From positions 1 to 64,000 of IMG/VR virus record IMGVR_UViG_3300048597_000634: DNA of 64,000 nucleotides; one strand, given 5' to 3'. How positions within the stretch are numbered: position 1 is the first letter of the stretch; each line of letters opens with the position of its first letter. Below are positions 4,401-28,838 of the stretch, one piece after another. The notes beneath the pieces are model-generated. The model was not told the DNA's origin. It was given only the letters and a program-made list of their open reading frames with translations, and searched no databases. The position numbers and the translations under genes were made by a program.

Positions 4401-4449
4401 TAGAAATACGGTAGTGGTCATACGGGGGATAGTGTTGGCTTTTTTATAG

Positions 4450-4463
4450 CGGCTGTCGCATTT
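4450..4463 (-). promoter_or_regulatory. Variant copy of the ACAGCCG promoter-like motif, upstream of the IS insertion
   Basis: - strand TTTAAATGCGACAGCCGC immediately after the 4466-4508 terminator. Confidence 0.4.
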
Positions 4464-4465
4464 AA

Positions 4466-4508
4466 AGAAAGAGATTAATCAAGGAAAATCCCTGATTAAT
4501 CTCTTTCT
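4466..4508 (-). terminator. Intrinsic terminator after the 370-aa membrane protein gene
   Basis: Perfect 16-bp inverted repeat AGAAAGAGATTAATCA / TGATTAATCTCTTTCT. Confidence 0.75.
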
Positions 4509-4511
4509 GGA

Positions 4512-6385: not shown

Positions 6386-6389
6386 AGGG

Positions 6390-6932: not shown

Positions 6933-7038
6933 TGTTTTGTTTAGGTCTTAGGTTGAACGGGAGGAAAAAGAAAAGAGAACACCAAGCGGCGTTCTCTTAG
7001 CTAATTAGAGGTAATCAGGTAGCAACGGTTAGTCAGTC

Positions 7039-7773
7039 TTACAGCGCACGACCACCAGTAGCGGCGGCAGCAGTAGGATTAACAGTTGGTGCAGCACTAA
7101 CACCGGGTACGAATACAGCGGCGGCGGCGGTGGCAGGTTGACCAGGAGCTTTAATGCCCTGTCCGATGAAATGGAAATCACCAGGGGTCCAGGCAAAGCT
7201 ATCTAACGCGGGCACCTGCCCCTCAATCCCACGCTCAGTGAGGGTAAAGGTCACATAACCGGTGTTAGGGGACTTGGGAGTCAACCACATACGTTGTTTG
7301 GCAGCTGCACTGCCAGTTTTGTAGTTGTTGTCGCCGTTGAGCGCCCATTGTTTGGCGTAGTTGATTAGGTTACTGAGGTCGTCTTCGGTGATTAAACCGG
7401 CGGCGACTTGGTCGGGACCTAAACGAATACGTTGGGTATAATGCCCGGAGTTGTGGGTGCCTTCGGTTTGACCTTTGGCTTTGGGTACTACGCTCAGTTT
7501 GAAGTCCTGGGCGGTGGCACCGCTAGGCACAACAATATGGCTGAGTTGGAATTTGCCTTCAACAGCTTGCTTACCATCGGGTAATTCGATGATGGTGGGC
7601 TCGGTGAAGGGAATTTCAAACATGCGCGCCGCTAAATCTTTAGCCAATACATAGAATGCTGGATTACCTTGGGTCTTCTCGTTTCGGAGTTGATCCATGA
7701 AGTATTCACACAGCATGAACTGAGAGGTTTCGGAAATGGCGCGGTACTGTTCGACGATGTTTGTAGTTTGCAT
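7039..7773 (-). CDS. Hypothetical protein (244 aa) with Ala/Pro-rich tail
   Basis: Long ORF with biased codon usage; followed by the hairpin AAGAGAACaccaagcggcGTTCTCTT. Confidence 0.7.
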   Translation of the reverse strand: MQTTNIVEQYRAISETSQFMLCEYFMDQLRNEKTQGNPAFYVLAKDLAARMFEIPFTEPTIIELPDGKQAVEGKFQLSHIVVPSGATAQDFKLSVVPKAKGQTEGTHNSGHYTQRIRLGPDQVAAGLITEDDLSNLINYAKQWALNGDNNYKTGSAAAKQRMWLTPKSPNTGYVTFTLTERGIEGQVPALDSFAWTPGDFHFIGQGIKAPGQPATAAAAVFVPGVSAAPTVNPTAAAATGGRAL

Positions 7774-7927
7774 TTTTTTGGTTAATGGTTAGGGTTTTGT
7801 TTACTTGGGGCGGAGCCTTATGACTCCATTTAATTCTCTTTTTCCCGCTCGGTGGGGCTAAAGGTGGGTTCTTTGGAGGGGCGCGGCGGCGCGGTTAATA
7901 TTCTTTTTACATTTCGGCGGGCATAGC

Positions 7928-7957
7928 TTGACAAATTAAAAGTTCGTAAATCATAAT
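7928..7957 (+). promoter_or_regulatory. Sigma70-consensus-like promoter facing a region with no + strand ORF
   Basis: TTGACA (7928-7933), 18 nt spacer, CATAAT (7952-7957). Confidence 0.5.
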
Positions 7958-7981
7958 GGGACTCAGCTAAGGTTAAGCCGG

Positions 7982-7997
7982 CGGCTATGACTCACAT
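7982..7997 (-). promoter_or_regulatory. Near-consensus copy of the ATGA-N5-AYAGCCG motif upstream of 7039-7773
   Basis: - strand ATGT-gagtc-ATAGCCG (one mismatch). Confidence 0.45.
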
Positions 7998-8272
7998 ACA
8001 TGTAGATAAGATGGTCCATACTCACGTCAGTCACTGGGGCGCTTAAGCTACATAGAGTCACTAGAACCCCGGTTTAATCAGCAAAGGTTCCATCAGCCCC
8101 CGTTTAGGGAAGCGGCAAAATGAGTTCCTAACGCTATAGCTACCTCAGGACAAGACTACATACAATATGACTTTTAAAACAGACTCATCATGAGCCTGGT
8201 TTTGTCGTATCTAGGCGTAGAAATAAAAAAGAAGGGCTAGCCTTGGGGACTAGCCGGGTAATGCTTTATTAG

Positions 8273-10682: not shown

Positions 10683-10885
10683 CCCCAAACAGGCCAACGT
10701 ACAGGGAACTATACTTTTCAATCCATCAGCTTGGCTATAGTTAACCTTCTGACTTGAGGACTAATTCGTCCATTTAATTTTCTTTTTACCGAACGGTGGA
10801 CCATTTAACTTAATACATGATATGATGCGCTTAAAAAAACCTTTTATACTCCCAGTTAAAGACTAAAAAAGAGCATAATTTGCTC

Positions 10886-11592: not shown

Positions 11593-11620
11593 ACTGACCC
11601 TTAGCTAATAGTTAATCCAA

Positions 11621-12043
11621 TCAGTTGTCTTTTTCCCGCAAGGCGGCGCCCAAGGTGGTGCTGAGCAAGGACAAAAACTCCCTCAAGTCATCCTCTTCTG
11701 TGAAGGATACCCTCTTGGTGGCGTGAAACCTAGTATCCTTTGTTATCATCCTGTCCAGGGGTAATAACGGGTCAATTAGTGAGTCATGGATAGACATATG
11801 TAAGATACTATCCCTCACCAGATAGTAATAAAAGAGGCATTTGCCCCTGCAACCCTGGCGCCATACAGATGTATATCGGCTAGTGATTCTAGGTAACAGC
11901 CCGTTGACCTTGATGTAGTCGTCCATTATGGTTGCTAAGGTGGGGATTGGCGCCGGCTTTGGTAATAGCTCCAGCAGCTTTTCCACAGGGAATACTAAGT
12001 GGACTTCTCCGTCGATAAGCCGGATATCAGTTAATACCTTCAT
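11621..12043 (-). CDS. Hypothetical protein (140 aa)
   Basis: ORF track. Confidence 0.6.
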   Translation of the reverse strand: MKVLTDIRLIDGEVHLVFPVEKLLELLPKPAPIPTLATIMDDYIKVNGLLPRITSRYTSVWRQGCRGKCLFYYYLVRDSILHMSIHDSLIDPLLPLDRMITKDTRFHATKRVSFTEEDDLREFLSLLSTTLGAALREKDN

Positions 12044-12178: not shown

Positions 12179-12835
12179 TTATTTGGTTAGGGCGGCAAAA
12201 CGAGCCAATGCAGCATCTATATCAGCCAAAGATAAACCCTTGGAGCCGGTGCCGTTACCAGCAAGGGTTCCTTTGGTATATCCTGCGCTGAAGCAGATAG
12301 CTTGGTAAGACTCTAATTGATAGGCAGGAGTGCCATCAGTTTTTACGCCAACCTGCACTTTGTTCCCGGCAGTATCCAATACATACTTCTGCTGCTCTTC
12401 AAGAGTCAACATAAGGATGATAGGGTTACCAGAGAAGTCAATGAATAGGTTGGGTTTTTCACCCTTGGGCGCAGCTAACCAGGCTTCGAGGGCTTCTACT
12501 TGTTTGTCGTTGATTACCATGGTGGCTTGACCTTCCTCAGCGGACTGAGATAGATTCAACCAACCCTTGAGGCTGAAATTATAATTCTTCTCCTGAGAGG
12601 GAACTATAACGCCGTCAACACAGGTGCCAGACAAACTAACGTAGATGCCATAACTCCCCTCCGAGTGGCGGGTTACAGCAAATACCTTGGAGCCAACGTT
12701 TGCTGTAGGTAGCACTACTAACCCACCCAGTTGCTCTACCATTACGGCAGGCAAGGATTGGTTAGTAATAGCTACCCGTAAGTTTTCGATGTTAGCAGCT
12801 ACGGACTCAGAAGAATTCAAGAATACTTTGGACAT
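12179..12835 (-). CDS. Hypothetical protein (218 aa)
   Basis: ORF track; GAGG upstream; terminator hairpin GACTAAACTCCCaggtGGGAGTCTAATC downstream. Confidence 0.7.
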   Translation of the reverse strand: MSKVFLNSSESVAANIENLRVAITNQSLPAVMVEQLGGLVVLPTANVGSKVFAVTRHSEGSYGIYVSLSGTCVDGVIVPSQEKNYNFSLKGWLNLSQSAEEGQATMVINDKQVEALEAWLAAPKGEKPNLFIDFSGNPIILMLTLEEQQKYVLDTAGNKVQVGVKTDGTPAYQLESYQAICFSAGYTKGTLAGNGTGSKGLSLADIDAALARFAALTK

Positions 12836-13168: not shown

Positions 13169-16100
13169 TTATTCAGCTTTAGACTCAAGCCACTTGCGGT
13201 AGCTCAGGTCTTTGTTGCCTTGGGCTTGGTAGAACCAATGCAAGTCTTCAGGTCCTTCAAAGTTGAAGTAGATGTCAGACGCTTTGGTAAACCGAGAACA
13301 GGCAACTAGTAGCCACTGGGCATCGTTCAGGGCTACTTTGTATGTCTTATGCTCACCGTCTTCTTCAAAGATGAATTGACGGTTCTTGTCTTTAGCTTTC
13401 CACTCTTGGCTAACGGAGATAACACCTTCATTAGTGATGGTCATCCCTTGTACGCTGTGCCCGGTGGTGGCGAAGTCGGGGTGGATGGGTAGTTGATAGA
13501 AAGCGCCGGGGGATTGTCCATCCTTACCAGCACCTTCGAAGCGTTCTACACCGATGTTTAGCTCTTTACCGTCTTCGAATAACACCCATACGGACTTCTT
13601 ACAGAGTTTAGTGATAAACCCACGGGAGCCGTTAGATGCTTCTAGAACGCCGTCTTTCTTACGGTTCTTGCGGAGCTTAACAGGCATACCTACAGCAAAT
13701 TCCATTACCGGTGCGATGGGGCTGAAGGCATATACCCAACCAGGATAGCGGTCGCCATTGATAGATACAGGACCGTTATTACCATGTATTTCAGCACGAT
13801 ATACCTTTGTTTCGGTACCCATAGCGCGGGTCATACGGCGATTAATGCGCTCAACCGTGACGTTATTGAAGCGTATATGGGTGGTATTAAGATTATCGCT
13901 GGGCTTTAAGCCTTCTTCAGCACAAAGACGGAAGCGCTCTAATAACACGCCGGTAATCTCATTAGTCTCAGACAAATGGCGGAGGGCGGCGGCGAGTTCA
14001 GGGTCTTCAGCTTGACGCACGTTGGTCTTGAGGTTGACACAACGGAAGTTCTCAATGATGTTTTCGAGGGTGCCGTTACAACCTTCAATGACAGCGCGCT
14101 GCCAGAAGTCCCGGGCACCTTTACCAATTACTTTGAGTTGGTCACCGTCGCCGGCGAGGATTACCTGGATGCAAGGATTGTGGTAGTAAAGGATATTCCA
14201 GATAACCCACAGCATGCGGGAATCTAACATGGATACTTCATCTAAGACGAAGTGTACCCGTTGACCTTCTTTTTCACCGTGGAGCATCACGCTTAGTTCG
14301 TCATTAGCTTGACCACGGGCAATCATGCGTTGACTCCAGGCGTAGGGAGTCATGGCGGCGGCGTCTTTCTCATCAAAGCCGATGCCTAGACCTAGAACGG
14401 AATTGAAGGTACCGTAACCGTCTAGGTTTTCTATATCAAAGCGGACGCCCATGTTCATTGCAGCACGACCGGTGGTGGCCGTAACGATTACTTTGTCGCC
14501 TAAGCCTAACCAATGGTTAATCATGGTTTCTAGGGCGTAGGTCTTACCGGTACCAGCTTCCCCGGATAGGAATATGTTGTCACCGGTGCATGCTGCGTTG
14601 AAGAACCGTTTTTGGCAGTCAGTGGCGCCGGTGTCATCTACTGGGGGGCAGGGGATGGACCGGGCTTTCTTTTTAGCATCGATTAGGTTCTTGGGCTCGG
14701 ACTTTTTTGCGTAGCCTTTGATTAGGTTGGCTACTACATCATCAGCGGATTGGGTTTGGGTGGGGGCGGGGGCGGGGGCGGGGGCGGGGGCGGGGGTATT
14801 CACGGCGGCTACTTCATCAACTTTATTGCTGATGGTAGCCTTTTTATTTGTCGTAGGGTCGGCTGCCACTTTAGTGGCGAACATAGCCATATTTGCCTGA
14901 TAGTCACCCTCTTCAGGAATGAACATATCCTCATCGGCACTAGGTGCAACTTGAGGAGTCACTGGGGCGGCGGCGGGTTGGCTAGCCGTTTCAGCCAATG
15001 ACTGACGAAGTGCATTCTCCGCGGGAGTGAAGGTGATGGTGTGGGCAGCGGCAGGTGCCGGGTCAGGCTTCTTAGGAGAATCATCTTTGGTTACTGGTAC
15101 ATTACCTTCACCGTCGTCAGATTCATCCTCATTAGGTTCATTACCGGTTACGTCTCCTAACATAGCGGCGAACTCAGGGGTGAGTTTAGCAACAACGTCA
15201 GCTAGTTTAGCCGATAACTTGGCCTTTTTGTCTTCCAACTTCTGCAGCGCCTTAGCCTGTTCTTGTTGTTTAGCTAACAAGGCTTGCGCTTTAGCCAAAC
15301 GGGTCTCAAGGGAGACAATCTCAGCCTCAACAGTGGCTTGCTTAGCCAAGAAGATTTTGTCTTCCGTGGGGGCTACTACAGGCGTAATAACTGCCGGGGT
15401 GGGCGCCGCCATGACTTGCGTCGGGGCCTCAGCAACCACTACTGGAGGAGGACTCATCAAAACAGCAAATGCTTGTTGAGCTTCCACCATATCATCGGTA
15501 GATTGCTCATCTTCGTCGATTACAACAGTGGGGGCGGGGGCTTCACTAACCATCATTTGAGCCATCATTGCCTGACTCATGGCAATTTCCTCCGCAGAGG
15601 GAGGGGTTATATCCATATATTCCTCGGGTTGATAATCATCGTAGATATTCTCGAAGGGGTCTACTAAATCAAAGTCATCAGAATCGATAACCATATAGTT
15701 AGTAGGGCTAACTTCTACATCCACGACGGTTTGCTTTAATTCAACTAGGTCAACATCACCCACACGAGCAGTTAATTGAGACTCATAGTGAGCCACCAAG
15801 TCTGCGCCGATGGTGTAAGTCAACGCAGTGTTAGGCGCGGGACCTACAACTAAGTCACCCAATACTTCAGGGTCAGCCATATCCATAAGCAACTGCAAGC
15901 AATGACTTTCAGATACAGCGTTAGCCCATACTTCATGGGTGGATACGCCTTTGACTAGGTAGTCAAGGGTGACGCGGGTCATGGCTTTGTGGTTACGGAC
16001 TTTCTCTTCACTGGCAACATTGGTGCTGTTGAGAGGTCCATGGTTAAAGCCGTGCCATTTAGCACGACCTGCTTCGGTTACCAACATGGCAGCGGCAACG

Positions 16101-19100
16101 ATGAACTGTACAACCCGGCGGTCATCCCGTTGCAGGTCGAATAGGAACATAGATTGTTGCTTAACCGTTCCGTTAGCATAGGATGCCAACCAGAATGCGG
16201 TAGCCATGGCGCCGGCTTGGTCAGGGTTAACACCAGCTTCAGATAGAATGTCAACCAGGTGGGCGGTCTTCTGCTCACGGAAGTAGCGGGCTTTAGACTC
16301 CGCCTCTAGGTTATGGTCGGTACCATTACCATCTACTTTATCGATGTGGATTAACGGAGCATGCCATACTGGGGCGAACTTCGCTTCCATTACAGCGCTT
16401 AGCAAACCCCAAAGTTCCCAACCTAAGTCGTTAACGGCACCTAATACATACTCATAGATATCTGCACAGGCAGTGACTGCGTAGTATGACTGAGGACCGA
16501 CGAAGGGTTTGAACATCTCAGGGATTTCCAACCCAGCTGCCTCGAATACACCGCCTTTAACCATACCGTTGAGGATATCAACGATGGCCTCGGTCAAGCG
16601 ATATACCTTGTAGCTGACACCAACCTGCTGGCTTTGTAGAATTAGAGAGCGCCAGTTGGTGGTGTTATAGGTAGTAGCAAGGACTAGGTGTTTACCTACA
16701 ACTACGCCGCTATCATATTTAACTGTTAGAAGACCAGCTCGGAAGAAGATATTAGCCTTCTTAGACAGGCTGGGGGCGCGCAAATGGTCACCCAAGTAAA
16801 CTTCTTTGATGGCCTGGGCACCAGGACCACCGGCACACATATCACAGCTATCCCATGCCTTGTCTTCGGTAGACACTAGACCACGCAAGCCAGCTACTTC
16901 AGTAACCAGGAACGTAGCACTAACGCCGTCACCGTCAGAGTCACCTTTGGTGATGTCAGTCATAGCAATGACCGAGACCCCGATGGTATAAGGATAGGGG
17001 TTAGCCATCACATCCTTCTTGGTCAATGGGTTATACACCCAAGGACGGTCGAAACAGTAGAAGGTATTGGCGTAGGCTTCTTGAGACTTAGGCATACGAA
17101 GTACCCGAAGCACAGGACCGTCTTTGATTGGACTACGGGTCAAGTGGTTAAACGCTTCACAACGTTCGGGTAGATCCCATACTGATTCACCATGGGCTTT
17201 ATAGTCAGCCCAGGTAGGTACGGCACGGAGGTCTAGTCCGTAGTGCTTAGCCACGCGGCGGGCATTAGCCCATTGGTCATCACCTTCATGGAGCAACATC
17301 ACTCCAGTGGGTAGGTTAGGCATGGCGATTACTTTACCGCCGAAGACCTCACCACCGGAAATAAACTTACGGACACCCTCAGAGGATGCCCAAGACTCCA
17401 TACGACCACACAACTGGTTGGCAATGATTCCGATGCTGCGACCGTCTAAGGAACCCGACAGGACTTCAGCTAAATACGCCTGGAACAAACCGCTAGCAGT
17501 GCTATGACTATTGTCTTCAGCACTACGACCATTGAGGTAATACAGGAACGGAGTCCAGACCTCGATGGATTTACTGACGGTGTAGACTTCACCGCTATCG
17601 GGGTCTACTTTGTATTCTTTGCGGGAAGCATCGATTTGAAAGATGTAGTCTTTGAGGGCATCACATAGCCCACCGAAGTTGGATACATTGCTGACATCAG
17701 CATTACCCAAGACGGCTTTAAGCGTATCGATAATCTCAGCATTGGGTATCCAGGTTGCGGCGCCGGCGCCCTTCTTACCTTCTTCCCATTTGCCTAATTT
17801 GACAACAGTACGGTCATCAATAGCTTTACTGAGCCCAGAGTAAGCACTCAGATGCAGCATTTTAGCCCGCCACATAGAGTTAGTTTTACCGGATAGACGT
17901 TGGTGACTAATTAGGTCTTTAGCCAACTCATCATTACCAATACCCCACGCATCGGTCATAGCCCGGAGGGAACGCATACAGACGTCCATCTGCCCGGAGC
18001 TGTTATTGTTGATGCCCTGACGAGTAGTAGCCGCTTCATAGAGGACTACATCGTAGATGGGGCAGTTCTTACGACCAACCAACATGGTGGACTGCTGAGC
18101 TACTTTAGCGACGCGCCCGGCTTTATTGATGAACAACACGAATGCATTGTCCTTGTCATTGGTGAAGCACTTGTAAGTGTAGTCTTCAGTAACACCGGCA
18201 GCCAGGGACATTACCAAGGCACGAGCTTCCTTAGCGTCGTCAATTAGACGCCATGAGTCGATACCACGGTCAGACATGTCAGTATAGAGACGGTCAATGG
18301 CGTAGCCGAAGTCACCGTGCTCTAGCTCTTCCCACATCGTCCAAACGTTTTCACGCTTGAAGTAGTTGAAGAAGGCAGTTTGAAGCTGCGTGTACAAGGG
18401 TTGAGCAACCATAGATACATGGTCTTCCACCAAATACTCCAGGTGGCGACGACCTTCTACTAATTCGTTGATGTCTTTAGCCATCTCAACCATGGCTAGG
18501 AACCCTGGCTCTTTACAGTCAGGGTTTAGTACCAAGGTGGCGCCGATGACGCTGATTAGACAGCCATCAACGTCAATCTTCATGGCGTCTTGCAAATACA
18601 CCGCGTCAACTGTTTTGCCTGCAGCATTAGGGAGCTTCAGGAATGTAGATTTGACGGGCATTAGGTTAGCCTTAGCCACAGAAGAACGAATCTTGGCTTG
18701 ACGTTCCATGGGTGTGACTTTGAATTCCACCTCCAAGTTCTTGCCAGTAATCTCAGGTGCTACGTGGACACGAACCCATTCCAAGATACCGTCGCCGTTA
18801 TTACCTTCATAGGCGAAGGGTTTACTGGGGGCTAGCTCATCATCGGTATGGACGTTACATACCACAGAACCACCATTGCCGTGGACATACACAGCGGTTT
18901 GAGGGTAGAAGTAGTAGTATTCGATACCACGTACCCGGTGAACCTCGGTCACTAACTCAACATCAGCCAATACACACTCAGGCTGACGGAAGTCCACTGC
19001 CAACTCAGGGCGAACTAAGTGGATATCATCAGCACCGAAACCGACGCCGGGTTGTACTTCGATAGCCCGTTGGGGAATCTCGAAGTTAGCCTGCTCGATG

Positions 19101-22100
19101 TTGGACCCAAAGCCATGGGGCATTTGGTTAGGACCACCAACCCAGGCTACGACACCAGCAGGACCAACGGCGGTCATACCGAGGGCAACACGGATGGCGG
19201 TACCGACGATGGGCTCGGGCTGGGTACTGAACTTATGGCCGGCTTTCACGGCGTAGAAGTTCTCGGGAAGCATCCCAGACCACATTGTATCGATGGGCTT
19301 AACACCACGACCGCTGGTTAAAGCTTTAGCCAACTCAGGTTTGTCTTGACAATTGATATAGCTACCTGATTGGACAGAGTTAGGGGCGCGTAGTAATTGA
19401 CGCTTGGTACCCTTGGCAACCTTACCGTTACTGTTTACGACACAGCTAGTTAGAAAAGCGTCCAAGGATTTGAACTTCGAGTCTGTTAGGAACGCATTAA
19501 CCTTGTCTTGACCGCCCATATCTAGGACGAATTGAGCTTTGACCAACTTATAGACAGCGGGGGCTACTTCTGCCAAGACTTTACAGTTGATAGCAAAGTT
19601 AGGCATTGAATACCCAACGTTCTTGTTGAACGACCAGGTAATACCCAGACGAGACATAGCCTCAGGCAAGAACGTGTCAGCAAACTCAGCGGTGGTCAGT
19701 TTAGCCTGCTTATAATTGGCAGCGTAGGACTTAATTAACTTGTCAGCGTATATACCCCAACAGTTAATCAACGCGTATTTGCCGGTATCACCAACCTTAA
19801 CCACCGGGCTGGGCATGGGGTTGCTGGTATCTAAACCCATAGGAGCCCAGCTATTGGACTCAGCCAAGCGGAAGTTAGCATTCTCTGCCAAGATATTGTC
19901 CGAAGACATGGGGAACATCACCCCAGCATCCTTGTTGAGATACTGGTTGAGGTTGGCTCCCACGGTGGACCAGTCATCTGACGCAGGTAGATGAGCCATT
20001 ACAGGCAATACCACCATGTATAGGTACCGCATGAAGCTACCCATAGAGGACATAGCTTCGGCACTACGGTAAATCTTAGCGGTGTTACCCCGTTCATCGG
20101 TCACCTCATCGTACATAGCTAGCACGACGTTCTTGAACATACGACCCCGGGGCAGGTCAATCATCGTATTGAGTTCAGGAACCCAGGCGAATTCTTTACC
20201 CAGGAAACTGAACACATAACCGTTACCATCCGCCTTGAAGTAGCAGAGGTCATCCTGATGGTTAGTAGCTTCATAGCTACGGAGAATGGCAATCACGTTC
20301 ATAACGTGTTCGGGTTGCCAATCAAAGCCGTGGAAACTGAGGTTAGGATTACAATCAACCTCTGACTTGTTCCCTGTTACGTCTTTGAGGTAGCGGATAA
20401 CGGAGAAGGCGCCTGATACACCATTGGTGCGGGCTTGGACACCCTCAGCATTGAAGCCTGTGGTGAGGTCAAGATTAGCCCAGCTACGAATGTGCTCCTG
20501 ACAGTAGCCAGAGATATCTTTGATGTCAGCCAACTCACGGTTAATCCACATGTTAGACATATGGGTGAGATAGTTAGCCAACTGACCGGCATAACCTTCC
20601 ATATTAGGGGCTGGGGTGGTCACCAAGGGGCGCTCAGGTAGGGCGGTGGTAGTGGGGGCTACTTTTACTTGAGGCGCGGGGGCAGGCTCAGCAGTTACTA
20701 CAACAGGTTCAGTAACGACTACTTGAGGGGCCGCTGAGACTTCGGTAACCGTTTCAGTCGCCACATTAACCACAGGGGCTGCTGCCGCAGATACTTTAGC
20801 CACGGACTGGATAGCATCCAACAGGGTAGCAATCACAGGAGATTGTGTTACTACAGCGGGGGCAGGAGCTACTTCCTTAACTTTCAACCGCGGTCCTTCA
20901 ATCACAGGCTTAGCCGGGGGCAATACCATCTGGCGACCGCCCTGCATCATCACATAAGCCTCATCCGCCCAGTCCATCAGACTACAGATGCGTACCCGTT
21001 GAGGGTCGTCTAAGCCATTACCGGCACGACCCAATTTAAACCGACGGGTAGGTTCATGAACTTCTAAATCAGCAATGTCACCGTAGAAACCACGGGCTAA
21101 CCCTTCGCTGATGCTGGGGTGCCAGGGGCCCAAGACCTTCTCAGTGTAGATATCACTGAGTTGAGGTAAATGGAATACCTCGATAGTTTGGGCAGTCATG
21201 CGTTCATAAGCGAACTCACGACCACGTTCGTACAAGTCAACTTTGGCAGTAGAGCCTTCGACGATAGCTTGACCATCAACTGCCTTAACGGTGAACATCT
21301 GGTCAAACCCTTTGCCCTCCTTGGAGGAGCCAGTGATAGAGGTCACATCAGCTACCACTACAATCCAGTTGCGACCGGGTTGTAGTTTGGCACCCAGACC
21401 CCCTTTGACGGCACAACCACCGGCTTTAACTTCACCGTCAGCCATGATGGCATTCCAGACATCAAGTCGGGCATCGATGATAGCCCGTTGTAGGGTGATG
21501 TTGTCCTCACCTTCGGCGGCTTTGGCTAGGTTAGCCACAGTCATCTGACCGTCTAGCATCACCGACACCTCAGGGGAGATTTCTGGGTATTTCTTCCGTA
21601 GGGTGTTGGGGCGGTTATACACATGGCTTAGCCACATACCACAAGGAGTGGGCAGTCCTTTGTTAAGCGCCGCGCTGGTGCGGAACTTAAGGACAGGTTG
21701 GTCTTTGCTGACCTTCAACAACGAGCTCTCATTGAGGGTTGTGTCTTCACAGACCATAGGCTCACCAAGACGAGGCCATTGCTTCTTACCAAAGTGGCTC
21801 TGGATGGGCAAATTGATATTGCCTTTGAATACTTGACGACCAGAGTCGTCTACATATACACAGCAAAGGCTCACGTAATACCCTAGTGAACGGTCACTAG
21901 ACGCGTGATCAGCCTTGATGGTTGCGGTATGGACAGCGGTCGGCATCAGGGTACCGACCTGTTTTGTTAGTTGGGATAGAGTGTCCATTGTTTCTCCTTG
22001 GTGTGTAGCTTCTAATAGTCCGCTTTTTAGATTGCGGTCGGTAGAAGCGCCATAGTTTAACGACATTTGGAGGTCGCCGGCGCCGTATTGTGCTTTAGCA

Positions 22101-22729
22101 TTAGCTACGATAGCTTTAGCGGCAGCCACAAACGGTTGACCTTTTGCGATCTGAACGATACCACGAACCACGCGTCGCACTATCAAATCCAAAACAGCAC
22201 TTAAGGTAAATGCAGCTCGGTTGGCTACTCGGCGGGCAGCTTTGGCTGCTTTACGGGCTACAGCGTAAACAACAGAACTGTGGCGAGCCTCCATTGAAAT
22301 AATGGTGTGGGCAACAGGAGTGTTGTTAAAGCTGATACGCATACCAGCACGGACAGGGGCGGCAGTCTTAAACAAACGGGCTTGGTCAATCAACTTCTGA
22401 CTGTCCCCGTTAGGGTTGCCTTTCTGATTAAGGCTGATAGTGTAGTTAAGGACAGAGGAGTTTAGGTTTAGTCCAGACAGATTAATGGTGAGTTTGTTAG
22501 TGTTCATAGTTTTTACCTGACTAATGTTTACGGAAGCCGGCTGTTGACTGGAGCCCGTCGAGAGCTGAGCCATAGGCGCTCCACCCTCAACGGACTCATC
22601 TAGACCGGGGTTTTGATGGGACCCCGCCTGGAACCCGTCGGGACTAATTTGAGTCCTCCCGACCGGACTGCCCGCGACTATTTGTAAGGCGCCATCGCTG
22701 GGCGCCATACCGGCAATTGATTTAGTCAT
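13169..22729 (-). CDS. Giant protein (3186 aa): putative single-chain two-barrel DNA-dependent RNA polymerase fused to a C-terminal Pif1/RecD-like SF1B helicase
   Basis: RNAP-like motifs in order: AKIRSSVAKANLMP...LPNAAGKTVDAVY (18671-18694 and following; beta-like), FGGKVIAMPNLP, HLTRSP (TRSP at 17129-17140), TKGDSDGDG (GDSDGD at 16928-16945). Helicase motifs: GEAGTGKT (14540-14563), TATTGRAA, LDEVSML, GDGDQL, NVRQAED, ATTGHSVQGMT, VACSR. Confidence 0.75.
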   Translation of the reverse strand: MTKSIAGMAPSDGALQIVAGSPVGRTQISPDGFQAGSHQNPGLDESVEGGAPMAQLSTGSSQQPASVNISQVKTMNTNKLTINLSGLNLNSSVLNYTISLNQKGNPNGDSQKLIDQARLFKTAAPVRAGMRISFNNTPVAHTIISMEARHSSVVYAVARKAAKAARRVANRAAFTLSAVLDLIVRRVVRGIVQIAKGQPFVAAAKAIVANAKAQYGAGDLQMSLNYGASTDRNLKSGLLEATHQGETMDTLSQLTKQVGTLMPTAVHTATIKADHASSDRSLGYYVSLCCVYVDDSGRQVFKGNINLPIQSHFGKKQWPRLGEPMVCEDTTLNESSLLKVSKDQPVLKFRTSAALNKGLPTPCGMWLSHVYNRPNTLRKKYPEISPEVSVMLDGQMTVANLAKAAEGEDNITLQRAIIDARLDVWNAIMADGEVKAGGCAVKGGLGAKLQPGRNWIVVVADVTSITGSSKEGKGFDQMFTVKAVDGQAIVEGSTAKVDLYERGREFAYERMTAQTIEVFHLPQLSDIYTEKVLGPWHPSISEGLARGFYGDIADLEVHEPTRRFKLGRAGNGLDDPQRVRICSLMDWADEAYVMMQGGRQMVLPPAKPVIEGPRLKVKEVAPAPAVVTQSPVIATLLDAIQSVAKVSAAAAPVVNVATETVTEVSAAPQVVVTEPVVVTAEPAPAPQVKVAPTTTALPERPLVTTPAPNMEGYAGQLANYLTHMSNMWINRELADIKDISGYCQEHIRSWANLDLTTGFNAEGVQARTNGVSGAFSVIRYLKDVTGNKSEVDCNPNLSFHGFDWQPEHVMNVIAILRSYEATNHQDDLCYFKADGNGYVFSFLGKEFAWVPELNTMIDLPRGRMFKNVVLAMYDEVTDERGNTAKIYRSAEAMSSMGSFMRYLYMVVLPVMAHLPASDDWSTVGANLNQYLNKDAGVMFPMSSDNILAENANFRLAESNSWAPMGLDTSNPMPSPVVKVGDTGKYALINCWGIYADKLIKSYAANYKQAKLTTAEFADTFLPEAMSRLGITWSFNKNVGYSMPNFAINCKVLAEVAPAVYKLVKAQFVLDMGGQDKVNAFLTDSKFKSLDAFLTSCVVNSNGKVAKGTKRQLLRAPNSVQSGSYINCQDKPELAKALTSGRGVKPIDTMWSGMLPENFYAVKAGHKFSTQPEPIVGTAIRVALGMTAVGPAGVVAWVGGPNQMPHGFGSNIEQANFEIPQRAIEVQPGVGFGADDIHLVRPELAVDFRQPECVLADVELVTEVHRVRGIEYYYFYPQTAVYVHGNGGSVVCNVHTDDELAPSKPFAYEGNNGDGILEWVRVHVAPEITGKNLEVEFKVTPMERQAKIRSSVAKANLMPVKSTFLKLPNAAGKTVDAVYLQDAMKIDVDGCLISVIGATLVLNPDCKEPGFLAMVEMAKDINELVEGRRHLEYLVEDHVSMVAQPLYTQLQTAFFNYFKRENVWTMWEELEHGDFGYAIDRLYTDMSDRGIDSWRLIDDAKEARALVMSLAAGVTEDYTYKCFTNDKDNAFVLFINKAGRVAKVAQQSTMLVGRKNCPIYDVVLYEAATTRQGINNNSSGQMDVCMRSLRAMTDAWGIGNDELAKDLISHQRLSGKTNSMWRAKMLHLSAYSGLSKAIDDRTVVKLGKWEEGKKGAGAATWIPNAEIIDTLKAVLGNADVSNVSNFGGLCDALKDYIFQIDASRKEYKVDPDSGEVYTVSKSIEVWTPFLYYLNGRSAEDNSHSTASGLFQAYLAEVLSGSLDGRSIGIIANQLCGRMESWASSEGVRKFISGGEVFGGKVIAMPNLPTGVMLLHEGDDQWANARRVAKHYGLDLRAVPTWADYKAHGESVWDLPERCEAFNHLTRSPIKDGPVLRVLRMPKSQEAYANTFYCFDRPWVYNPLTKKDVMANPYPYTIGVSVIAMTDITKGDSDGDGVSATFLVTEVAGLRGLVSTEDKAWDSCDMCAGGPGAQAIKEVYLGDHLRAPSLSKKANIFFRAGLLTVKYDSGVVVGKHLVLATTYNTTNWRSLILQSQQVGVSYKVYRLTEAIVDILNGMVKGGVFEAAGLEIPEMFKPFVGPQSYYAVTACADIYEYVLGAVNDLGWELWGLLSAVMEAKFAPVWHAPLIHIDKVDGNGTDHNLEAESKARYFREQKTAHLVDILSEAGVNPDQAGAMATAFWLASYANGTVKQQSMFLFDLQRDDRRVVQFIVAAAMLVTEAGRAKWHGFNHGPLNSTNVASEEKVRNHKAMTRVTLDYLVKGVSTHEVWANAVSESHCLQLLMDMADPEVLGDLVVGPAPNTALTYTIGADLVAHYESQLTARVGDVDLVELKQTVVDVEVSPTNYMVIDSDDFDLVDPFENIYDDYQPEEYMDITPPSAEEIAMSQAMMAQMMVSEAPAPTVVIDEDEQSTDDMVEAQQAFAVLMSPPPVVVAEAPTQVMAAPTPAVITPVVAPTEDKIFLAKQATVEAEIVSLETRLAKAQALLAKQQEQAKALQKLEDKKAKLSAKLADVVAKLTPEFAAMLGDVTGNEPNEDESDDGEGNVPVTKDDSPKKPDPAPAAAHTITFTPAENALRQSLAETASQPAAAPVTPQVAPSADEDMFIPEEGDYQANMAMFATKVAADPTTNKKATISNKVDEVAAVNTPAPAPAPAPAPTQTQSADDVVANLIKGYAKKSEPKNLIDAKKKARSIPCPPVDDTGATDCQKRFFNAACTGDNIFLSGEAGTGKTYALETMINHWLGLGDKVIVTATTGRAAMNMGVRFDIENLDGYGTFNSVLGLGIGFDEKDAAAMTPYAWSQRMIARGQANDELSVMLHGEKEGQRVHFVLDEVSMLDSRMLWVIWNILYYHNPCIQVILAGDGDQLKVIGKGARDFWQRAVIEGCNGTLENIIENFRCVNLKTNVRQAEDPELAAALRHLSETNEITGVLLERFRLCAEEGLKPSDNLNTTHIRFNNVTVERINRRMTRAMGTETKVYRAEIHGNNGPVSINGDRYPGWVYAFSPIAPVMEFAVGMPVKLRKNRKKDGVLEASNGSRGFITKLCKKSVWVLFEDGKELNIGVERFEGAGKDGQSPGAFYQLPIHPDFATTGHSVQGMTITNEGVISVSQEWKAKDKNRQFIFEEDGEHKTYKVALNDAQWLLVACSRFTKASDIYFNFEGPEDLHWFYQAQGNKDLSYRKWLESKAE
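14762..14796 (+). repeat. (GGGGGC)n hexamer repeat, six G5 tracts; encodes the PAPAPA linker on the - strand
   Basis: Read directly: GGGGG at 14762, 14768, 14774, 14780, 14786, 14792. Confidence 0.9.
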
Positions 22730-22958
22730 TAGAGATACCTCCGAAGTAGTTAACGCTAGCCTGCGTTTTTACCGGCGCAACCCGGTCTAGAATCGAATAC
22801 AACCACAGGGGGTTTTGAATCCCCCAAACTAGTAGGTCATTGGGCGTTACACCGTAGACCTGGTAAATGGCTTTGGCGGTGGCCGATACCACCGCGTTGA
22901 CTAGGTACAGTCCAAAGAGGGCATATACCCAAATAGTCAGCAGACAGAAAATGTCCAT
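22722..22958 (-). CDS. Small membrane protein (78 aa), translationally coupled to the 3186-aa gene
   Basis: Hydrophobic N-terminus; stop overlaps the giant gene's start (ATGACTAA). Confidence 0.55.
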   Translation of the reverse strand: MDIFCLLTIWVYALFGLYLVNAVVSATAKAIYQVYGVTPNDLLVWGIQNPLWLYSILDRVAPVKTQASVNYFGGISND

Positions 22959-23022
22959 ACGAAATTAGACGCCCTATAGACGCCGTTAAGGTTAATGACT
23001 ACCGGTGAACATAGTCAGTAAA

Positions 23023-23051
23023 AACCCCCTTCTAACGATTAGAAGGGGGTT
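23023..23051 (-). terminator. Intrinsic terminator
   Basis: Perfect 13-bp stem AACCCCCTTCTAA-CGA-TTAGAAGGGGGTT with a T-run on the - strand. Confidence 0.75.
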
Positions 23052-23059
23052 AAGGTGAT

Positions 23060-23295
23060 CGGTTGCGTAATTTTCAATAATGACAAAACCTATACTGAGA
23101 GGGCGTTTTAGGTCTTAAGCGCAACTATTACGTCCGAACACCTAAGAAAAGCGGCTTCCTCGGAGGCTTAAAAGTGTACGCTTGCGTAGACGCCAATATC
23201 TCTAAAGTATATAGCTGGCTTCGGTTACAGCTCCAAGCTTAGTTGGTTAGAAGCGTACACTAGAGGCTCGTCGATGATATATAGTCGGCTGTCTC
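23060..23295. ncRNA. Candidate structured non-coding RNA between two terminators
   Basis: No ORF. 11-bp inverted repeat AGTGTACGCTT (23173-23183)/AAGCGTACACT (23251-23261), C(UUCG)G-capped hairpin, further hairpins, and a promoter-like motif at 23286-23301. Confidence 0.4.
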
Positions 23296-23304
23296 TCTCA
23301 TAAA

Positions 23305-23340
23305 AGTGACCCCAGTTTCCTTTTGGATTCTGGGGTCACT
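23305..23340 (-). terminator. Intrinsic terminator after the HExxH gene
   Basis: AGTGACCCCAG / CTGGGGTCACT 11-bp inverted repeat. Confidence 0.75.
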
Positions 23341-23347
23341 AGCTTAT

Positions 23348-23806
23348 TTAGAACGGGGGTGGGTTCCCGCAAAGGCTCGCCAAGAAGTCTTTAAACCCCT
23401 TGTTAACTTCATAGTTATCCCCCCAGTCGACCGCCCACTGGGCTAGACAATCAACTATCATTTCCTCTTCCAGTGCCCACTTATCGTAGGCGTGGAAGCG
23501 GACTTTGAAATCCACCTCCCGGAAATACCGACGCACAAAGGCGTTACCCTTGTAAGTCAGCTTACCCGTATGGCACAGGTGGTGACCCAGTTCATGGATC
23601 ATTGTCCGAAAGCCCCGCCCGGTGCCATACCGAGCGTGGTTGATGAAGATTAAGTGCTCGCCCGGGAAATACATCCCGTTCCACTCCTCAAGGGAGCAGT
23701 GGAACCGGGCTCTCGCCCAGTCGCCTGAGTCTGGCGTTATCCACCGGATACTGAGGTTGAAATTGTTTTGTAGATACTGAGACCACTCGTAACAACGATT
23801 AGCCAT
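23348..23806 (-). CDS. Zincin-like metallopeptidase (ImmA/IrrE/SprT-like)
   Basis: TMIHELGHHLCH (HExxH) and a downstream EEMIVDCLA third-ligand-like motif. Confidence 0.7.
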   Translation of the reverse strand: MANRCYEWSQYLQNNFNLSIRWITPDSGDWARARFHCSLEEWNGMYFPGEHLIFINHARYGTGRGFRTMIHELGHHLCHTGKLTYKGNAFVRRYFREVDFKVRFHAYDKWALEEEMIVDCLAQWAVDWGDNYEVNKGFKDFLASLCGNPPPF

Positions 23807-24050
23807 ATTTAACTCCTGCCGAGTGTATCGGTTGTTTGGACGTTAAAAATATGGCCGGGTAGGGCTATCGAGGTGCGGTTGTCTGGGTGCGGCTGTGGTG
23901 GTCTGACAGTGTTGAATACTGTCCTGAGGAAACCGAATTACACGCGAGACACGCCTACACTGGTAGGATCTGGCACTTAAGCACTATGTCTGCGGATAAT
24001 CGGCTGTTATCCTCATAAAAGAGGGGGTAACCTCTATAAGTTACCCTCTT

Positions 24051-24422: not shown

Positions 24423-24947
24423 TTACACTACAGCTTGACCGAAGAGATTTTTGATTTCTTCTTCAGTAGCATTAGCAAGCATATCAACGTCAAGCAACTG
24501 GTTTGTTAGCCCAGCTACTAGTTGAGAGCCTAGCTCCTTGTTTTGTTGAGTTACTGCATCGAGGGCTTCGATTTTTGCTTTCGCTTCATCTACTGCCACT
24601 TGTGCCCGTTCTTTGCTAGCTTTAACTTCTACCGCCAATGTCCTCATACGTAGACCAACCGCTTTCGCTGCGTTGACTACATTTTTGGCATCTTGAGCTT
24701 CTTTTTCAGCTTTCTCAACAGACTCTTCTACGCTTTTTATTTTTGCTTCAGACTCCACTTTCGCTTCATCATTGGCTAATTCAAAGGTCGTTAATTTCTC
24801 CACTAAGGGTTGATTAACAGAGTCATCCAAGTTGTAGCTCTTAAGTAGGTTATTAGCCCGCTCCTCTGCAGTAGGTTCCTTATCTTCGACCTTACGACCA
24901 AAAATGTTACCAAACAAAGCAGCTACGTTATTGTTAGTGTTAGACAT
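24423..24947 (-). CDS. Coiled-coil protein, paralogue A (174 aa)
   Basis: Shares MSN.NNNVAALFGN.F.RK and AKNVVNAAKAVGLRMRTLA with 25106-25669. Confidence 0.8.
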   Translation of the reverse strand: MSNTNNNVAALFGNIFGRKVEDKEPTAEERANNLLKSYNLDDSVNQPLVEKLTTFELANDEAKVESEAKIKSVEESVEKAEKEAQDAKNVVNAAKAVGLRMRTLAVEVKASKERAQVAVDEAKAKIEALDAVTQQNKELGSQLVAGLTNQLLDVDMLANATEEEIKNLFGQAVV

Positions 24948-25105: not shown

Positions 25106-25669
25106 TTAGACGATTTTCACGTCAGCTGCCTTTTCAGGCACCTTTACACCAGAAGAAGAACCAAAGAGGGCATTTATCTCCTCTTCAGTGGCGTTAGCCA
25201 GCATATCTAAACTCAATAGAGGGTTGGTTAGACCATCTAAGAGTTGATTACCTAGCTCTTTATTCTGCTTAGTGTTTACTTCCAAAGTTTCGATTTTCGC
25301 TTTCGCTTCTTCTACCGCTTTTTCAGCTTTTTCCTTTGCAGCTTTTGCTTCTATGGCAAGAGTACGCATACGTAGACCAACCGCTTTCGCTGCGTTGACT
25401 ACGTTTTTGGCCTCTAATTCTTTGTCTTCTGCATCTTTGATTGCTTTTTGGGCTTTCTCAATGGTCTGCTTAGAATCAGCTTTCGCGTCATCGACAGACT
25501 GTTCAAAAGTTGCAAGTTTTTGAACAACAGGAGCACTCACAACAGGGTCAAGTTTATAGGACTCAACCAACTTTGCTGCCCGCTCTTCAGGTGTTTCCAC
25601 TTTCTCAACAGTTTTGCGACTGAAGAGATTACCAAATAGAGCAGCTACGTTGTTGTTAATATTAGACAC
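25106..25669 (-). CDS. Coiled-coil protein, paralogue B (187 aa)
   Basis: Tandem paralogue of 24423-24947; GTG start. Confidence 0.8.
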   Translation of the reverse strand: MSNINNNVAALFGNLFSRKTVEKVETPEERAAKLVESYKLDPVVSAPVVQKLATFEQSVDDAKADSKQTIEKAQKAIKDAEDKELEAKNVVNAAKAVGLRMRTLAIEAKAAKEKAEKAVEEAKAKIETLEVNTKQNKELGNQLLDGLTNPLLSLDMLANATEEEINALFGSSSGVKVPEKAADVKIV

Positions 25670-27669: not shown

Positions 27670-27717
27670 ACTTCATGCCTCCTACCGCACGTAGCGGCTA
27701 TATAGGTCATGAAATAA

Positions 27718-27752
27718 CCCCCTCTATACACCAGGGGAGGCATATAGAGGGG
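27718..27752 (-). terminator. Terminator hairpin with 14-nt loop
   Basis: CCCCTCTATA-caccaggggaggca-TATAGAGGGG; loop identical to that at 28241-28284. Confidence 0.7.
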
Positions 27753-27760
27753 ATTATGTT

Positions 27761-28195: not shown

Positions 28196-28240
28196 AACGT
28201 TAGCCCCTAGGTGTCTAAGGGCGGTATAGTTCATGAAGAA

Positions 28241-28284
28241 AAAACCTCCCCTATACACCAGGGGAGGCATATAGGGGAGGTTTT
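28241..28284 (-). terminator. Terminator hairpin with 14-nt loop
   Basis: AAAACCTCCCCTATA-caccaggggaggca-TATAGGGGAGGTTTT. Confidence 0.75.
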
Positions 28285-28651: not shown

Positions 28652-28731
28652 TAATTCCCCGTCCATCCGCTGTTAATTCCCCGTCCATCCGCTGTTAATT
28701 CCCCGTCCATCCGCTGTTAATTCCCCGTCCA
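28652..28731. repeat. 22-bp tandem direct repeat, 3.6 copies (iteron-like)
   Basis: TAATTCCCCGTCCATCCGCTGT at 28652, 28674 and 28696, partial at 28718; degenerate ATTCCCCGTC near 28786 and 28841. Confidence 0.95.
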
Positions 28732-28838
28732 GCTCCGTTTATCAGCTTTTTACTAGACCGCCTATACGCCGTTTATCCCCCGCCCATTCCCCGTCTATTT
28801 CCCACTTCTTCCCTATTTATTCCCCACCTACAGCCAAC

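Follow-up and report, generated by a model that had tools for sequence, protein, structure and literature searches.

A giant jumbo-phage protein joining a divergent polymerase-like core to an SF1B helicase

Two-barrel RNA polymerases contained in a single giant phage protein have been described in a few systems. The virion RNA polymerase gp66 of the crAss-like Cellulophaga phage phi14:2 (PDB 6VR4) carries both barrels and a DxDxD motif in one polypeptide, flanked by large regions with no known homologues, and a neighboring zincin-like protease gene is fused with it in some phages (bioRxiv 10.1101/2020.03.07.982082). Gp66 is packaged in virions but transcribes only single-stranded or denatured DNA in vitro, and its eukaryotic relative QDE-1 needs the QDE-3 helicase and RPA. 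Thermus phage P23-45 carries two such enzymes, the non-virion gp64 and gp96, a virion RNA polymerase fused to a tape-measure protein in a multifunctional chain of about 5000 aa. Coliphage N4 virion RNA polymerase gp50, although T7-like (right-hand fold) and unrelated to two-barrel enzymes, is likewise a giant protein of about 3000–3500 aa with a central polymerase and an N-terminal region of unknown fold, is fused to a zincin-like protease, and is grouped with the "polyvalent proteins," which carry variable extra enzymatic domains aimed at host defenses and are proposed to jump-start transcription after DNA entry (PMC5512222). The SF1B helicases include T4 Dda, RecD2, Pif1, and the helicase domains of TraA/TraI relaxases, the latter being C-terminal or internal parts of large proteins that travel with DNA into a new cell.

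Here we examined a window of 64,000 nucleotides (positions 1 to 64,000 of IMG/VR record IMGVR_UViG_3300048597_000634), in which a sequence-only reading had proposed that one 3186-aa chain fuses an RNA polymerase to a Pif1-like helicase. The window derives from a jumbo phage (public contig of 205.5–214 kb), with portal, protease, and major head protein genes at 52.8–58.1 kb. The observation itself was confirmed: the open reading frame is uninterrupted (Table 1), and all of the motifs on which the reading rested are present, namely WVRVHV at aa 1318, LEVEFKV at 1332, AKANLMP at 1352, GKTVDAVY at 1371, GGEVFGGKV at 1792, HLTRSP at 1862, DSDGDG at 1930, GEAGTGKT at 2723, HSVQG at 3091, and VACSR at 3142. 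Two minor corrections are needed, as the low-complexity linker is about 320 aa (19% Ala, 11% Pro) rather than about 400 aa, and the start codon is uncertain: M1 has a GGAGG Shine-Dalgarno sequence 8 nt upstream, whereas the public gene call starts at M75 (3112 aa) and the closest homolog aligns from M53. The interpretation was only partly supported, as detailed below.

Table 1. Coordinates of the giant gene, its predicted parts, and two flanking genes within the 64,000-nt window.
Position	Strand	Residues	Feature	Remarks
13169..22729	-	1-3186	Whole ORF, 3186 codons plus stop	Actual start may be M1, M53 or M75
18953..22729	-	1-1259	N-terminal region	No recognizable domain; conserved with near relatives from about aa 53-250 and with all near relatives from about aa 690 onward; Pro/Ala/Val-rich spacer around aa 620-700
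15590..18952	-	1260-2380	Conserved polymerase-like core	Modeled over aa 1260-2280 at pLDDT 82 and pTM 0.81
18671..18694	-		KIRSSVAK, candidate basic loop of the β-type barrel	K1346, R1348 and K1353 invariant in 36/36; R-to-K spacing of 5 matches QDE-1 R738/K743 (PMC2919709)
18572..18598	-		YLQDAMKID	Invariant D1381 and K1384, near-invariant D1386; possible substitute for the fourth catalytic Asp, but after the basic loop instead of before it
16907..17362	-	1790-1941	Candidate β'-type double-psi barrel	Order in the model: β1 β2 α1 (extra helix) β3 β4 β5 α2 [DxDGD] β6
17129..17137	-		RSP	R1865 and P1867 invariant in 36/36; equivalent to Rpb1 R446/P448 and QDE-1 R962/P964
16925..16945	-		GDSDGDG, Mg-binding aspartate triad (by equivalence)	D1930/D1932/D1934 invariant in 36/36; DFDGD or DYDGD in many distant members
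14624..15589	-	2381-2702	Low-complexity linker	Acidic, Pro/Ala-rich and coiled-coil segments; equivalent position in relatives carries NADAR, AlkB-like, RNase H, DUF4326 and DUF7831 domains
13172..14623	-	2703-3186	SF1B helicase	I GEAGTGKT, Ia TTG, II DEVSM, III GDGDQL, IV NVRQ, V TTGHSVQG, VI VACSR
23348..23806	-		Upstream 152-aa zincin-type metalloprotease gene (HELGH)	Conserved upstream of the giant gene in two relatives (L004, L005) and fused inside the giant protein of a third (P0007)
12179..12835	-		Downstream 218-aa gene of unknown function	Directly downstream of the giant gene (or of its split helicase gene) in 5 of 6 related contigs

The C-terminal 484 aa is a bona fide SF1B helicase domain that exceeds the Pfam gathering scores for AAA_19 (54.6 bits against a cut-off of 25.1), AAA_30 (54.5 against 27), and PIF1 (30.6 against 25.9), and matches PHROG 325 "Dda-like helicase" at E 2.4e-40. 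In an alignment of 27 relatives, G2723, G2726, G2728, and K2729 of motif I are present in 27/27, D2830 and E2831 of motif II in 25/27 and 27/27, respectively, and T2753/G2754 (Ia), G2860/D2861/Q2864 (III), R2905 (IV), and T3089/Q3094/G3095/T3097 (V) are at least 90% conserved, while the column of motif VI, although VACSR is present in the query, did not reach 90%. The name "Pif1-like" is nevertheless too specific. The best matches are of the Dda/RecD2/TraA type, only about 70 N-terminal residues align to solved Pif1 structures by sequence, and the NCBIfam models for RecD2, TraA, and RecD rank first but fall far below their equivalog cut-offs. "SF1B, Dda/RecD-like" is the safer name.

The fusion is not an artifact. 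A protein search of 1.84 billion sequences yielded a family of 50 representatives, unannotated and mostly 2000–4500 aa, of which about 27 carry the same C-terminal helicase, including P0002 to P0005, P0007, and about 20 more. The reading had itself named evidence from homologs of an assembly or read-through artifact as grounds for rejecting it, and the homologs instead retain the fusion, in independent assemblies from JGI, Logan, and NCBI samples at 26–84% identity. Core and helicase identities are also correlated (Mantel r 0.89, with 0/2000 permutations reaching this value), indicating that the two parts have co-diverged. In one relative, L006, the helicase is a separate gene in the same frame, 53% identical to aa 2696–3184, following two TAA stops in a duplicated AAATAAATG and beginning with its own ATG, which shows that covalent tethering is dispensable. 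Scans of IMG/VR and JGI metagenomes for further relatives returned only the window's own contig and relatives already found by the protein search, and megablast and tblastn of the core against 50,697 GenBank phage records, as well as the same search with a distant family member, found nothing.

The assignment of the core to RNA polymerases is supported but not proven. Among 36 aligned family members, which share only 18–39% identity with the query apart from one 84% relative, G1929 and G1933 are invariant in addition to the residues listed in Table 1, and the D.DGD motif occurs at the aligned place in nearly all members that cover it, often reading DFDGD or DYDGD as in β' and QDE-1. These invariant positions map onto seven of the eight residues reported as invariant in every two-barrel polymerase (PMC2919709), in the same order: R1348 and K1353 correspond to the two basic residues of the β-type barrel (Rpb2 K979/K987; QDE-1 R738/K743), R1865 and P1867 to the Arg-x-Pro, and D1930, D1932, and D1934 to the triad (Rpb1 D479/481/483; QDE-1 D1007/1009/1011). 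R1865 and P1867 lie 65 residues before the triad, the extra length being accounted for by a low-confidence insertion. The eighth residue, an Asp located before the basic loop (Rpb2 D837; QDE-1 D709), could not be mapped, as there is no conserved acidic residue in the 60 residues before the loop. We considered E1317 as the missing catalytic acid, but it is present in only 10/36 sequences, and the invariant D1381 and near-invariant D1386 lie 28–33 residues after the loop.

Structural evidence for two double-psi β-barrels (DPBBs), as the reading had proposed, rests on these residues and on the order of secondary structure in a predicted model. An AlphaFold2 model built from 7 sequences was unusable (pLDDT 50), whereas a model built from the 36-sequence alignment was confident overall and showed the order β-β-α-β-β-β-α-[DxDGD]-β expected of a DPBB around the triad, followed by a 41-residue helix, although the first barrel region was modeled at a pLDDT of only about 60–78. 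A Foldseek search of the PDB with this model returned no hit at or below E 1e-3 (best E 0.25), with two bacterial β' chains, 9n9p_D and 8gzg_D, at ranks 2 and 14 (E 0.27 and 1.1). The only significant fold match is another uncharacterized phage protein, ORF65L of Microcystis phage MaMV-DC (E 1.8e-14, TM 0.47/0.56).

No sequence or profile search linked the core significantly to a known polymerase. Pfam, PHROGs, and NCBIfam recognized no domain in aa 1–2700, and a PDB sequence search matched only Pif1 N-termini with the single protein and returned noise with a 7-sequence profile. Comparison of the family profile by hhalign with single sequences of gp66, E. coli β, and E. coli β' found nothing, and comparison with an alignment of 73 crAss RNA polymerase sequences built from IMG/VR loci and with the E. 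coli β basic-loop region gave P values of 0.28 and 0.18, respectively. Against a β' barrel alignment of low diversity (74–97% identity), the match was colinear through GGK.., NRAP~TRSP, and NADFDGD~GDSDGD, but weak (P 0.015–0.08).

The genomic context was not considered in the sequence-only reading and changes the picture, as it includes the zincin protease gene, the domains inserted in the linker of relatives, and the split helicase gene of L006, such that the chain may be a processed polyprotein rather than an obligate tether. In addition to the domains listed in Table 1, relatives carry an amidoligase domain, and the presence of several unrelated enzymatic domains in a giant chain associated with a zincin-like metallopeptidase fits the description of polyvalent proteins. 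Repeated intergenic motifs were considered as phage promoters, but the clearest families (D3 and D6) turned out to be conserved ribosome-binding sites and 5' ends of paralogous small genes.

Taken together, we consider it somewhat more likely than not that the gene encodes a giant multi-domain early-function protein, in which the N-terminal region precedes a very divergent single-chain two-barrel nucleotide polymerase core, most likely a DNA-templated RNA polymerase, followed by a flexible linker and an ATP-driven SF1B helicase. The active site would be built from the β-type basic loop and the β'-type barrel carrying Arg-x-Pro and the triad. In this view, the protein would act at the very start of infection, as do N4 vRNAP, gp66, and gp96, and would probably be delivered from the virion, although nothing in the sequence shows virion packaging and the gene lies about 30 kb from the head genes, among small genes of unknown function. 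The helicase would translocate on and unwind the incoming DNA, handing single-stranded template to a polymerase that, like gp66 and QDE-1, may be poor at opening duplex DNA by itself, so that no sigma factor or host RNA polymerase would be needed, and the neighboring protease may process the chain. Our analysis establishes the reading frame, the helicase domain, the invariant residues, the conservation and co-divergence of the fusion, and its split and fused variants, whereas the polymerase fold, template-dependent NTP polymerization with RNA as its product, 5'-3' translocation and unwinding, virion delivery, and cooperation between helicase and polymerase are inferred. The suggestions of the earlier reading that the tethered helicase opens promoters without a sigma factor, clears R-loops, or couples transcription to replication priming likewise remain hypotheses.

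Among the alternatives, it is possible, although only tentatively so, that the chain is cut, probably by the neighboring zincin protease, into independent polymerase, cargo, and helicase proteins, in which case the fusion would serve co-packaging, co-delivery, or stoichiometry rather than mechanical coupling. The adjacent protease, which is fused in one relative, the long and variable linker that accepts unrelated domains, and the separate helicase gene in L006 are consistent with this possibility, and processing by zincin-like peptidases is the proposed rule for polyvalent proteins (PMC5512222) and has been suggested for crAss polyproteins. However, no cleavage site is known, and the strict C-terminal position of the helicase and its co-divergence with the core show a lasting functional partnership, whether or not the chain is cut. 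This possibility is compatible with the explanation favored above apart from the tether itself.

It is less likely that the protein is a replication-initiation module, in which the two-barrel polymerase acts as a primase or origin-transcribing enzyme and the 5'-3' helicase as the fork helicase, forming a primosome in one chain analogous to primase-helicase fusions such as T7 gp4 or PrimPol-helicase proteins, a replication enzyme rather than an early transcriptase. Dda/RecD-type helicases work at replication forks, primases are frequent components of transferred polyvalent proteins that jump-start replication (PMC5512222), and two-barrel cores can be DNA polymerases, as in PolD (PMC7708050). 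One relative, P0005, carries an RNase H domain between core and helicase, which would fit processing of an RNA into a primer, as at ColE1 or mitochondrial origins. By contrast, RNase H is present in only one of the relatives examined, the other inserted domains (NADAR, AlkB-like, DUF4326) point to counter-defense or repair, no replication genes were recognized next to the gene, and the giant size, the zincin association, and the unrecognizable N-terminal region resemble virion RNA polymerases more than replisome parts.

It is also unlikely that the central region is not a polymerase, with GDxDGD and the basic residues belonging to some other metal-binding or structural domain of a giant internal virion or ejection protein that happens to carry a helicase. 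The lack of significant matches and the unmapped eighth residue favor this view, and a second giant ORF in the window (5341 aa) also has a conserved D[YF]DGD inside coiled-coil-rich sequence, showing that the pentapeptide alone is weak evidence. Nevertheless, seven catalytic-site residues are invariant at low overall identity in the canonical order and spacing, the secondary-structure order around the triad is that of a double-psi barrel, the weak alignment to β' is colinear, and known members of the superfamily are just as undetectable to one another, gp66 and QDE-1 being 8.6% identical. An assembly chimera or read-through of two adjacent genes, for which only the split in L006 could be cited, is refuted by the recurrence of the architecture and the absence of an internal stop.

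A more far-reaching possibility, which we regard as speculative, is that a previously unrecognized lineage of two-barrel RNA polymerases has been hard-wired since early in the family's history to a DNA helicase and often to DNA-repair or anti-defense enzymes, forming an autonomous machine to unwind, clean, and transcribe (or prime) DNA, with which some jumbo phages start infection without sigma factors or host polymerase. It would be a natural covalent version of the QDE-1/QDE-3 partnership, and its β-type barrel may also have a rearranged catalytic Asp. If the core is indeed such a polymerase, it would add a new, very divergent branch to a superfamily central to ideas on the origin of transcription and of RNAi polymerases, and it would be, as far as the literature we could search shows, the first such polymerase covalently joined to a helicase. 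It would also offer a direct test of how sigma-less single-chain polymerases gain access to duplex DNA, a question left open for gp66, and would give a function to a family of giant hypothetical proteins in uncultured jumbo phages, as well as a lead for the Microcystis phages Ma-LMM01 and MaMV-DC. The variable linker cargo (NADAR, AlkB-like, RNase H) marks a site where phages load predicted counter-defense enzymes.

In comparison with known systems, full motif sets and Pfam scores above threshold are shared with the SF1B helicases, but fusion to a polymerase-like core is not a feature of Dda, RecD2, TraA/TraI, or Pif1. MaMV-DC ORF65L (1677 aa; with Ma-LMM01-type relatives) shares RxP, GDADGD, and downstream motifs with the family profile, but it has no helicase domain, is not detected by tblastn, and is unannotated, as are all its relatives, while the published Ma-LMM01 transcriptome study assumes that transcription depends wholly on host sigma-70 (PMC5780444). 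The N4 enzyme resembles the protein in size, layout, and zincin association but not in polymerase type, and in the passages on polyvalent proteins that we consulted (PMC5512222) the only RNA polymerase module described is the N4-like one. For P23-45, no sequence or fold match was found and the fusion partner is a tape-measure protein rather than a helicase, although the window likewise holds a second giant ORF with a conserved D[YF]DGD, whose polymerase nature is unproven. Neither 6VR4 nor 2J7N (QDE-1) was a Foldseek hit. Gp66 lacks a helicase domain, shows no detectable sequence or profile similarity to the core, and has Ile/Val as the fourth motif residue, where the protein described here has Gly, as in cellular enzymes, so that the resemblance is one of kind, a giant single-chain protein with a neighboring zincin, rather than of family membership. 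The R-to-K spacing of the basic loop equals that of QDE-1, and as both gp66 and QDE-1 depend on single-stranded template, and QDE-1 on a separate helicase, a built-in helicase would be mechanistically sensible.

An uninterrupted ORF of 3186 codons is present in the window, and all of the peptide motifs on which the sequence-only reading had based an RNA polymerase-Pif1-like helicase fusion in a single chain were found in its translation, at aa 1318-1378, 1792-1935 and 2723-3146. That observation therefore holds. The start of the protein is uncertain, however, as M1 has a GGAGG 8 nt upstream, the public gene call begins at M75 (3112 aa), and the closest homolog aligns from M53. The window is phage DNA, with genes for a portal, a prohead protease and a major head protein and no tRNAs, and the source contig is 205.5-214 kb, so this is a jumbo phage. 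The giant gene is slightly more G+C-rich (0.50-0.515) than its flanks (0.45-0.47). The positions of this gene, its neighbors and other features of the window and of related contigs are collected in the table.

Positions of the giant gene, its neighbors and other features in the window and in related contigs
Feature	Sequence	Position	Strand	Details
Giant ORF	Window	13169..22729	-	
Region compared for G+C content	Window	14000-24000		
GGGGCGGGGGCGG repeats	Window	14758-14799		Encode the PAPAPAPAP stretch of the linker
HELGH zincin-type metalloprotease gene	Window	23348-23806	-	152 aa; directly upstream of the giant gene
Gene of unknown function	Window	12179-12835	-	218 aa; no family match
Second giant ORF	Window	35305-51330	-	5341 aa; no Pfam or PHROG match
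Portal, prohead protease and major head protein genes	Window	52.8-58.1 kb		
Insertion-sequence-type transposase	Window	2990-4270	-	Inside the phage genome; PHROG 506, E 6e-100
Tandem array of a 22-nt unit (TAATTCCCCGTCCATCCGCTGT)	Window	28652-28797		Three perfect copies plus degenerate ones; intergenic stretch among small genes
Two paralogous small genes	Window	24423-24947 and 25106-25669	-	174 and 187 aa; a 211-nt repeat at 722-nt spacing; the same pair is duplicated in L003, a related contig
Repeated intergenic motifs (CCCCTCTATA...TATAGAGGGG; TTTTTCCCGCTCGGTGGGG)	Window	27711-27755 and 28238-28282; 7825-7867, 10769-10811 and 11616-11658		Hairpin potential; candidate regulatory sites
Junction of core gene and separate helicase gene	L006 (related contig)	16960-16990		Reads K-stop-MK-stop-MKF
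ORF65L of Microcystis phage MaMV-DC	L014 (MaMV-DC)	3225-8258	-	1677 aa; GDADGD at aa 1351; annotated as hypothetical

Residues 2703-3186 are an SF1B helicase, with Pfam scores of 54.6 bits for AAA_19, 54.5 bits for AAA_30 and 30.6 bits for PIF1, all above their gathering scores, and a match to PHROG 325 (Dda-like helicase) at E 2.4e-40. Among NCBIfam models, RecD2, TraA and RecD rank first, although all fall far below the equivalog cut-offs, and solved Pif1 chains align only over the first ~70 residues. "SF1B, Dda/RecD-like" is therefore a safer label than "Pif1-like", as the sequence-only reading had named it. In an alignment of 27 family helicase domains, the diagnostic residues of motifs I, Ia, II, III, IV and V are at least 90% conserved, indicating that the ATPase is under selection.

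The fusion of the two modules is real and old. A word-indexed search found six relatives from JGI, Logan and NCBI assemblies at 28-84% identity in the core, five of which carry the same C-terminal helicase. An exhaustive profile search of 1.84 billion representatives found 50 family members, most of them 2000-4500 aa; about 27 of these have the C-terminal helicase, while the shorter members (1400-1750 aa) lack it. Across 24 sequences, the pairwise identities of core and helicase are tightly correlated (Mantel r 0.89, with 0 of 2000 permutations reaching this value), and the two modules have therefore diverged together rather than being joined repeatedly. In one relative, contig L006, the helicase is a separate gene in the same frame that starts right after two TAA stops, formed together with a new ATG by a duplicated AAATAAATG, and that is 53% identical to aa 2696-3184. 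This shows a functional link between the modules, but also that covalent linkage is dispensable.

Whether the center of the protein is a two-barrel polymerase was examined by several approaches, and the similarity searches were negative. No Pfam, PHROG or NCBIfam model hits aa 1-2700, and a PDB sequence-profile search found nothing. Likewise, hhalign comparisons with gp66, β and β' single sequences gave no match, nor did a comparison with a 73-sequence crAss-like RNAP profile (P 0.28). A Foldseek search of a confident model against the PDB gave no hit at or below E 1e-3, with bacterial β' chains (9n9p among them) appearing at ranks 2 and 14 with E 0.27 and 1.1.

By contrast, the residue signature is consistent with a two-barrel polymerase. 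In an alignment of 36 sequences that share only 18-39% identity with the query (apart from one 84% relative), K1346, R1348, K1353, D1381, K1384, R1865, P1867, G1929, D1930, D1932, G1933 and D1934 are invariant. Ruprich-Robert and Thuriaux (PMC2919709) defined eight residues that are invariant in every two-barrel polymerase, which in QDE-1 are D709, R738, K743, R962, P964 and D1007/1009/1011. Seven of these map here in the same order, with the same R-to-K spacing of 5, the R-x-P and the D-x-D-G-D, and distant family members even read DFDGD or DYDGD. The eighth has no conserved counterpart, as no conserved acidic residue precedes the basic loop; instead, an invariant Asp in a YxQDAxKxD block lies 28 residues after it.

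AlphaFold2 with the 36-sequence alignment gave a model with pLDDT 82 and pTM 0.81. The predicted order of elements around the triad is β(1795-1802) β(1810-1814) α(1818-1829) [extra α] β(1860-1865) β(1873-1879) β(1915-1918) α(1920-1926) DxDGD β(1935-1941), which fits the double-psi barrel order and parallels β' (SGRSVI, NRAP and NADFDGD). A 41-residue helix follows about 90 residues later and is a candidate bridge helix. An hhalign comparison of this sub-profile with a β' barrel alignment is colinear through all three landmarks, but weak (P 0.015-0.08). Overall, we consider the polymerase reading likely but not established, and the interpretation put forward in the sequence-only reading is partly supported. 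It is worth noting that known members of this superfamily are just as invisible to one another, gp66 and QDE-1 being 8.6% identical.

The only significant fold relative is a protein of a cultured cyanophage. Foldseek against BFVD gave one hit, fragment 2 of A0A075BUT7 from Microcystis phage MaMV-DC (E 1.8e-14, TM 0.47/0.56), which we take to be ORF65L on the basis of its size, as the full-length protein halves into 839-aa fragments, and of its GDADGD motif. The family profile aligns to its RxP, GDADGD and downstream motifs, but this distant relative of the core has no helicase, and all of its relatives are unnamed. The transcriptome study of Ma-LMM01 assumed purely host sigma-70 transcription. 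By MaMV-DC gene numbering alone, the small genes immediately downstream of ORF65L (ORFs 64 to 53) would match the early cluster gp054-gp063 reported for Ma-LMM01.

The genes around the giant gene are also partly conserved. The HELGH protein encoded upstream has a weak match to Pfam M78 and a match to a PHROG 87 metalloprotease at E 3.5e-5. Its gene is conserved upstream of the giant gene in the related contigs L004 and L005, and in P0007, another family member, it is fused inside the giant protein (aa 855-991, HEFGH, E 7.6e-24). The 218-aa gene lies immediately downstream of the giant gene, or of its split helicase gene, in 5 of 6 related contigs. In addition, the ~320-aa low-complexity linker corresponds in related proteins to a slot filled with other domains, including NADAR (P0003, P0007 and P0013), an AlkB-like 2OG-Fe(II) oxygenase (P0013), RNase H (P0005), DUF4326 (P0003 and P0018) and DUF7831 (P0003), while P0010 has an amidoligase N-terminal to the core. 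The second giant ORF carries a strongly conserved block, ISAFGFQFxGLGD[YF]DGDSYQAAL, at aa 3645 in all four homologs (4505-5312 aa). Its hhalign comparison with the polymerase family around the triad gave only P 0.012, and it may be a second DxDGD enzyme, as in phages with virion plus non-virion RNAPs, or the resemblance may be coincidental.

In the best-supported mechanism, the protein would be an early-acting, probably virion-delivered enzyme, in which the SF1B motor unwinds or translocates on the entering genome and presents single-stranded template to a sigma-independent two-barrel polymerase. The rationale is that crAss gp66 transcribes only single-stranded or denatured DNA in vitro, and that QDE-1 needs the QDE-3 helicase plus RPA. 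The ORF, the helicase domain, the invariant residues and the lasting association of the two modules are established from the sequences themselves, whereas the polymerase fold and activity, the movement of the helicase on DNA, delivery from the virion and the cooperation of the two modules are inferred. Alternatively, the chain might be a polyprotein that is cut by the zincin, so that the parts act separately. It might also be a primosome-like replication starter, a reading that the RNase H insert in one relative fits but the other linker domains do not, or the core may not be a polymerase. An assembly or read-through artifact is excluded.

Full-text searches found giant virion two-barrel RNAPs (crAss gp66 and P23-45 gp96), N4 vRNAP and polyvalent proteins, but no report of a two-barrel polymerase fused to a helicase, and at the tblastn level the family has no member among 50,697 GenBank phage records. 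We place the protein, provisionally, with the giant single-chain two-barrel polymerases of phages and the polyvalent early proteins, which are already known; what would be new, as far as these searches show, is the joining of such a putative core to a helicase. The placement is provisional because one defining residue is lacking and the barrel fold is inferred from invariant residues and from the order of elements in a model without a significant PDB match. The variable domains and the adjacent protease follow the "polyvalent protein" pattern described for injected phage and plasmid proteins, including the N4 virion RNAP with its fused zincin (PMC5512222), and also parallel crAss gp66, which has a neighboring zincin gene that is sometimes fused.
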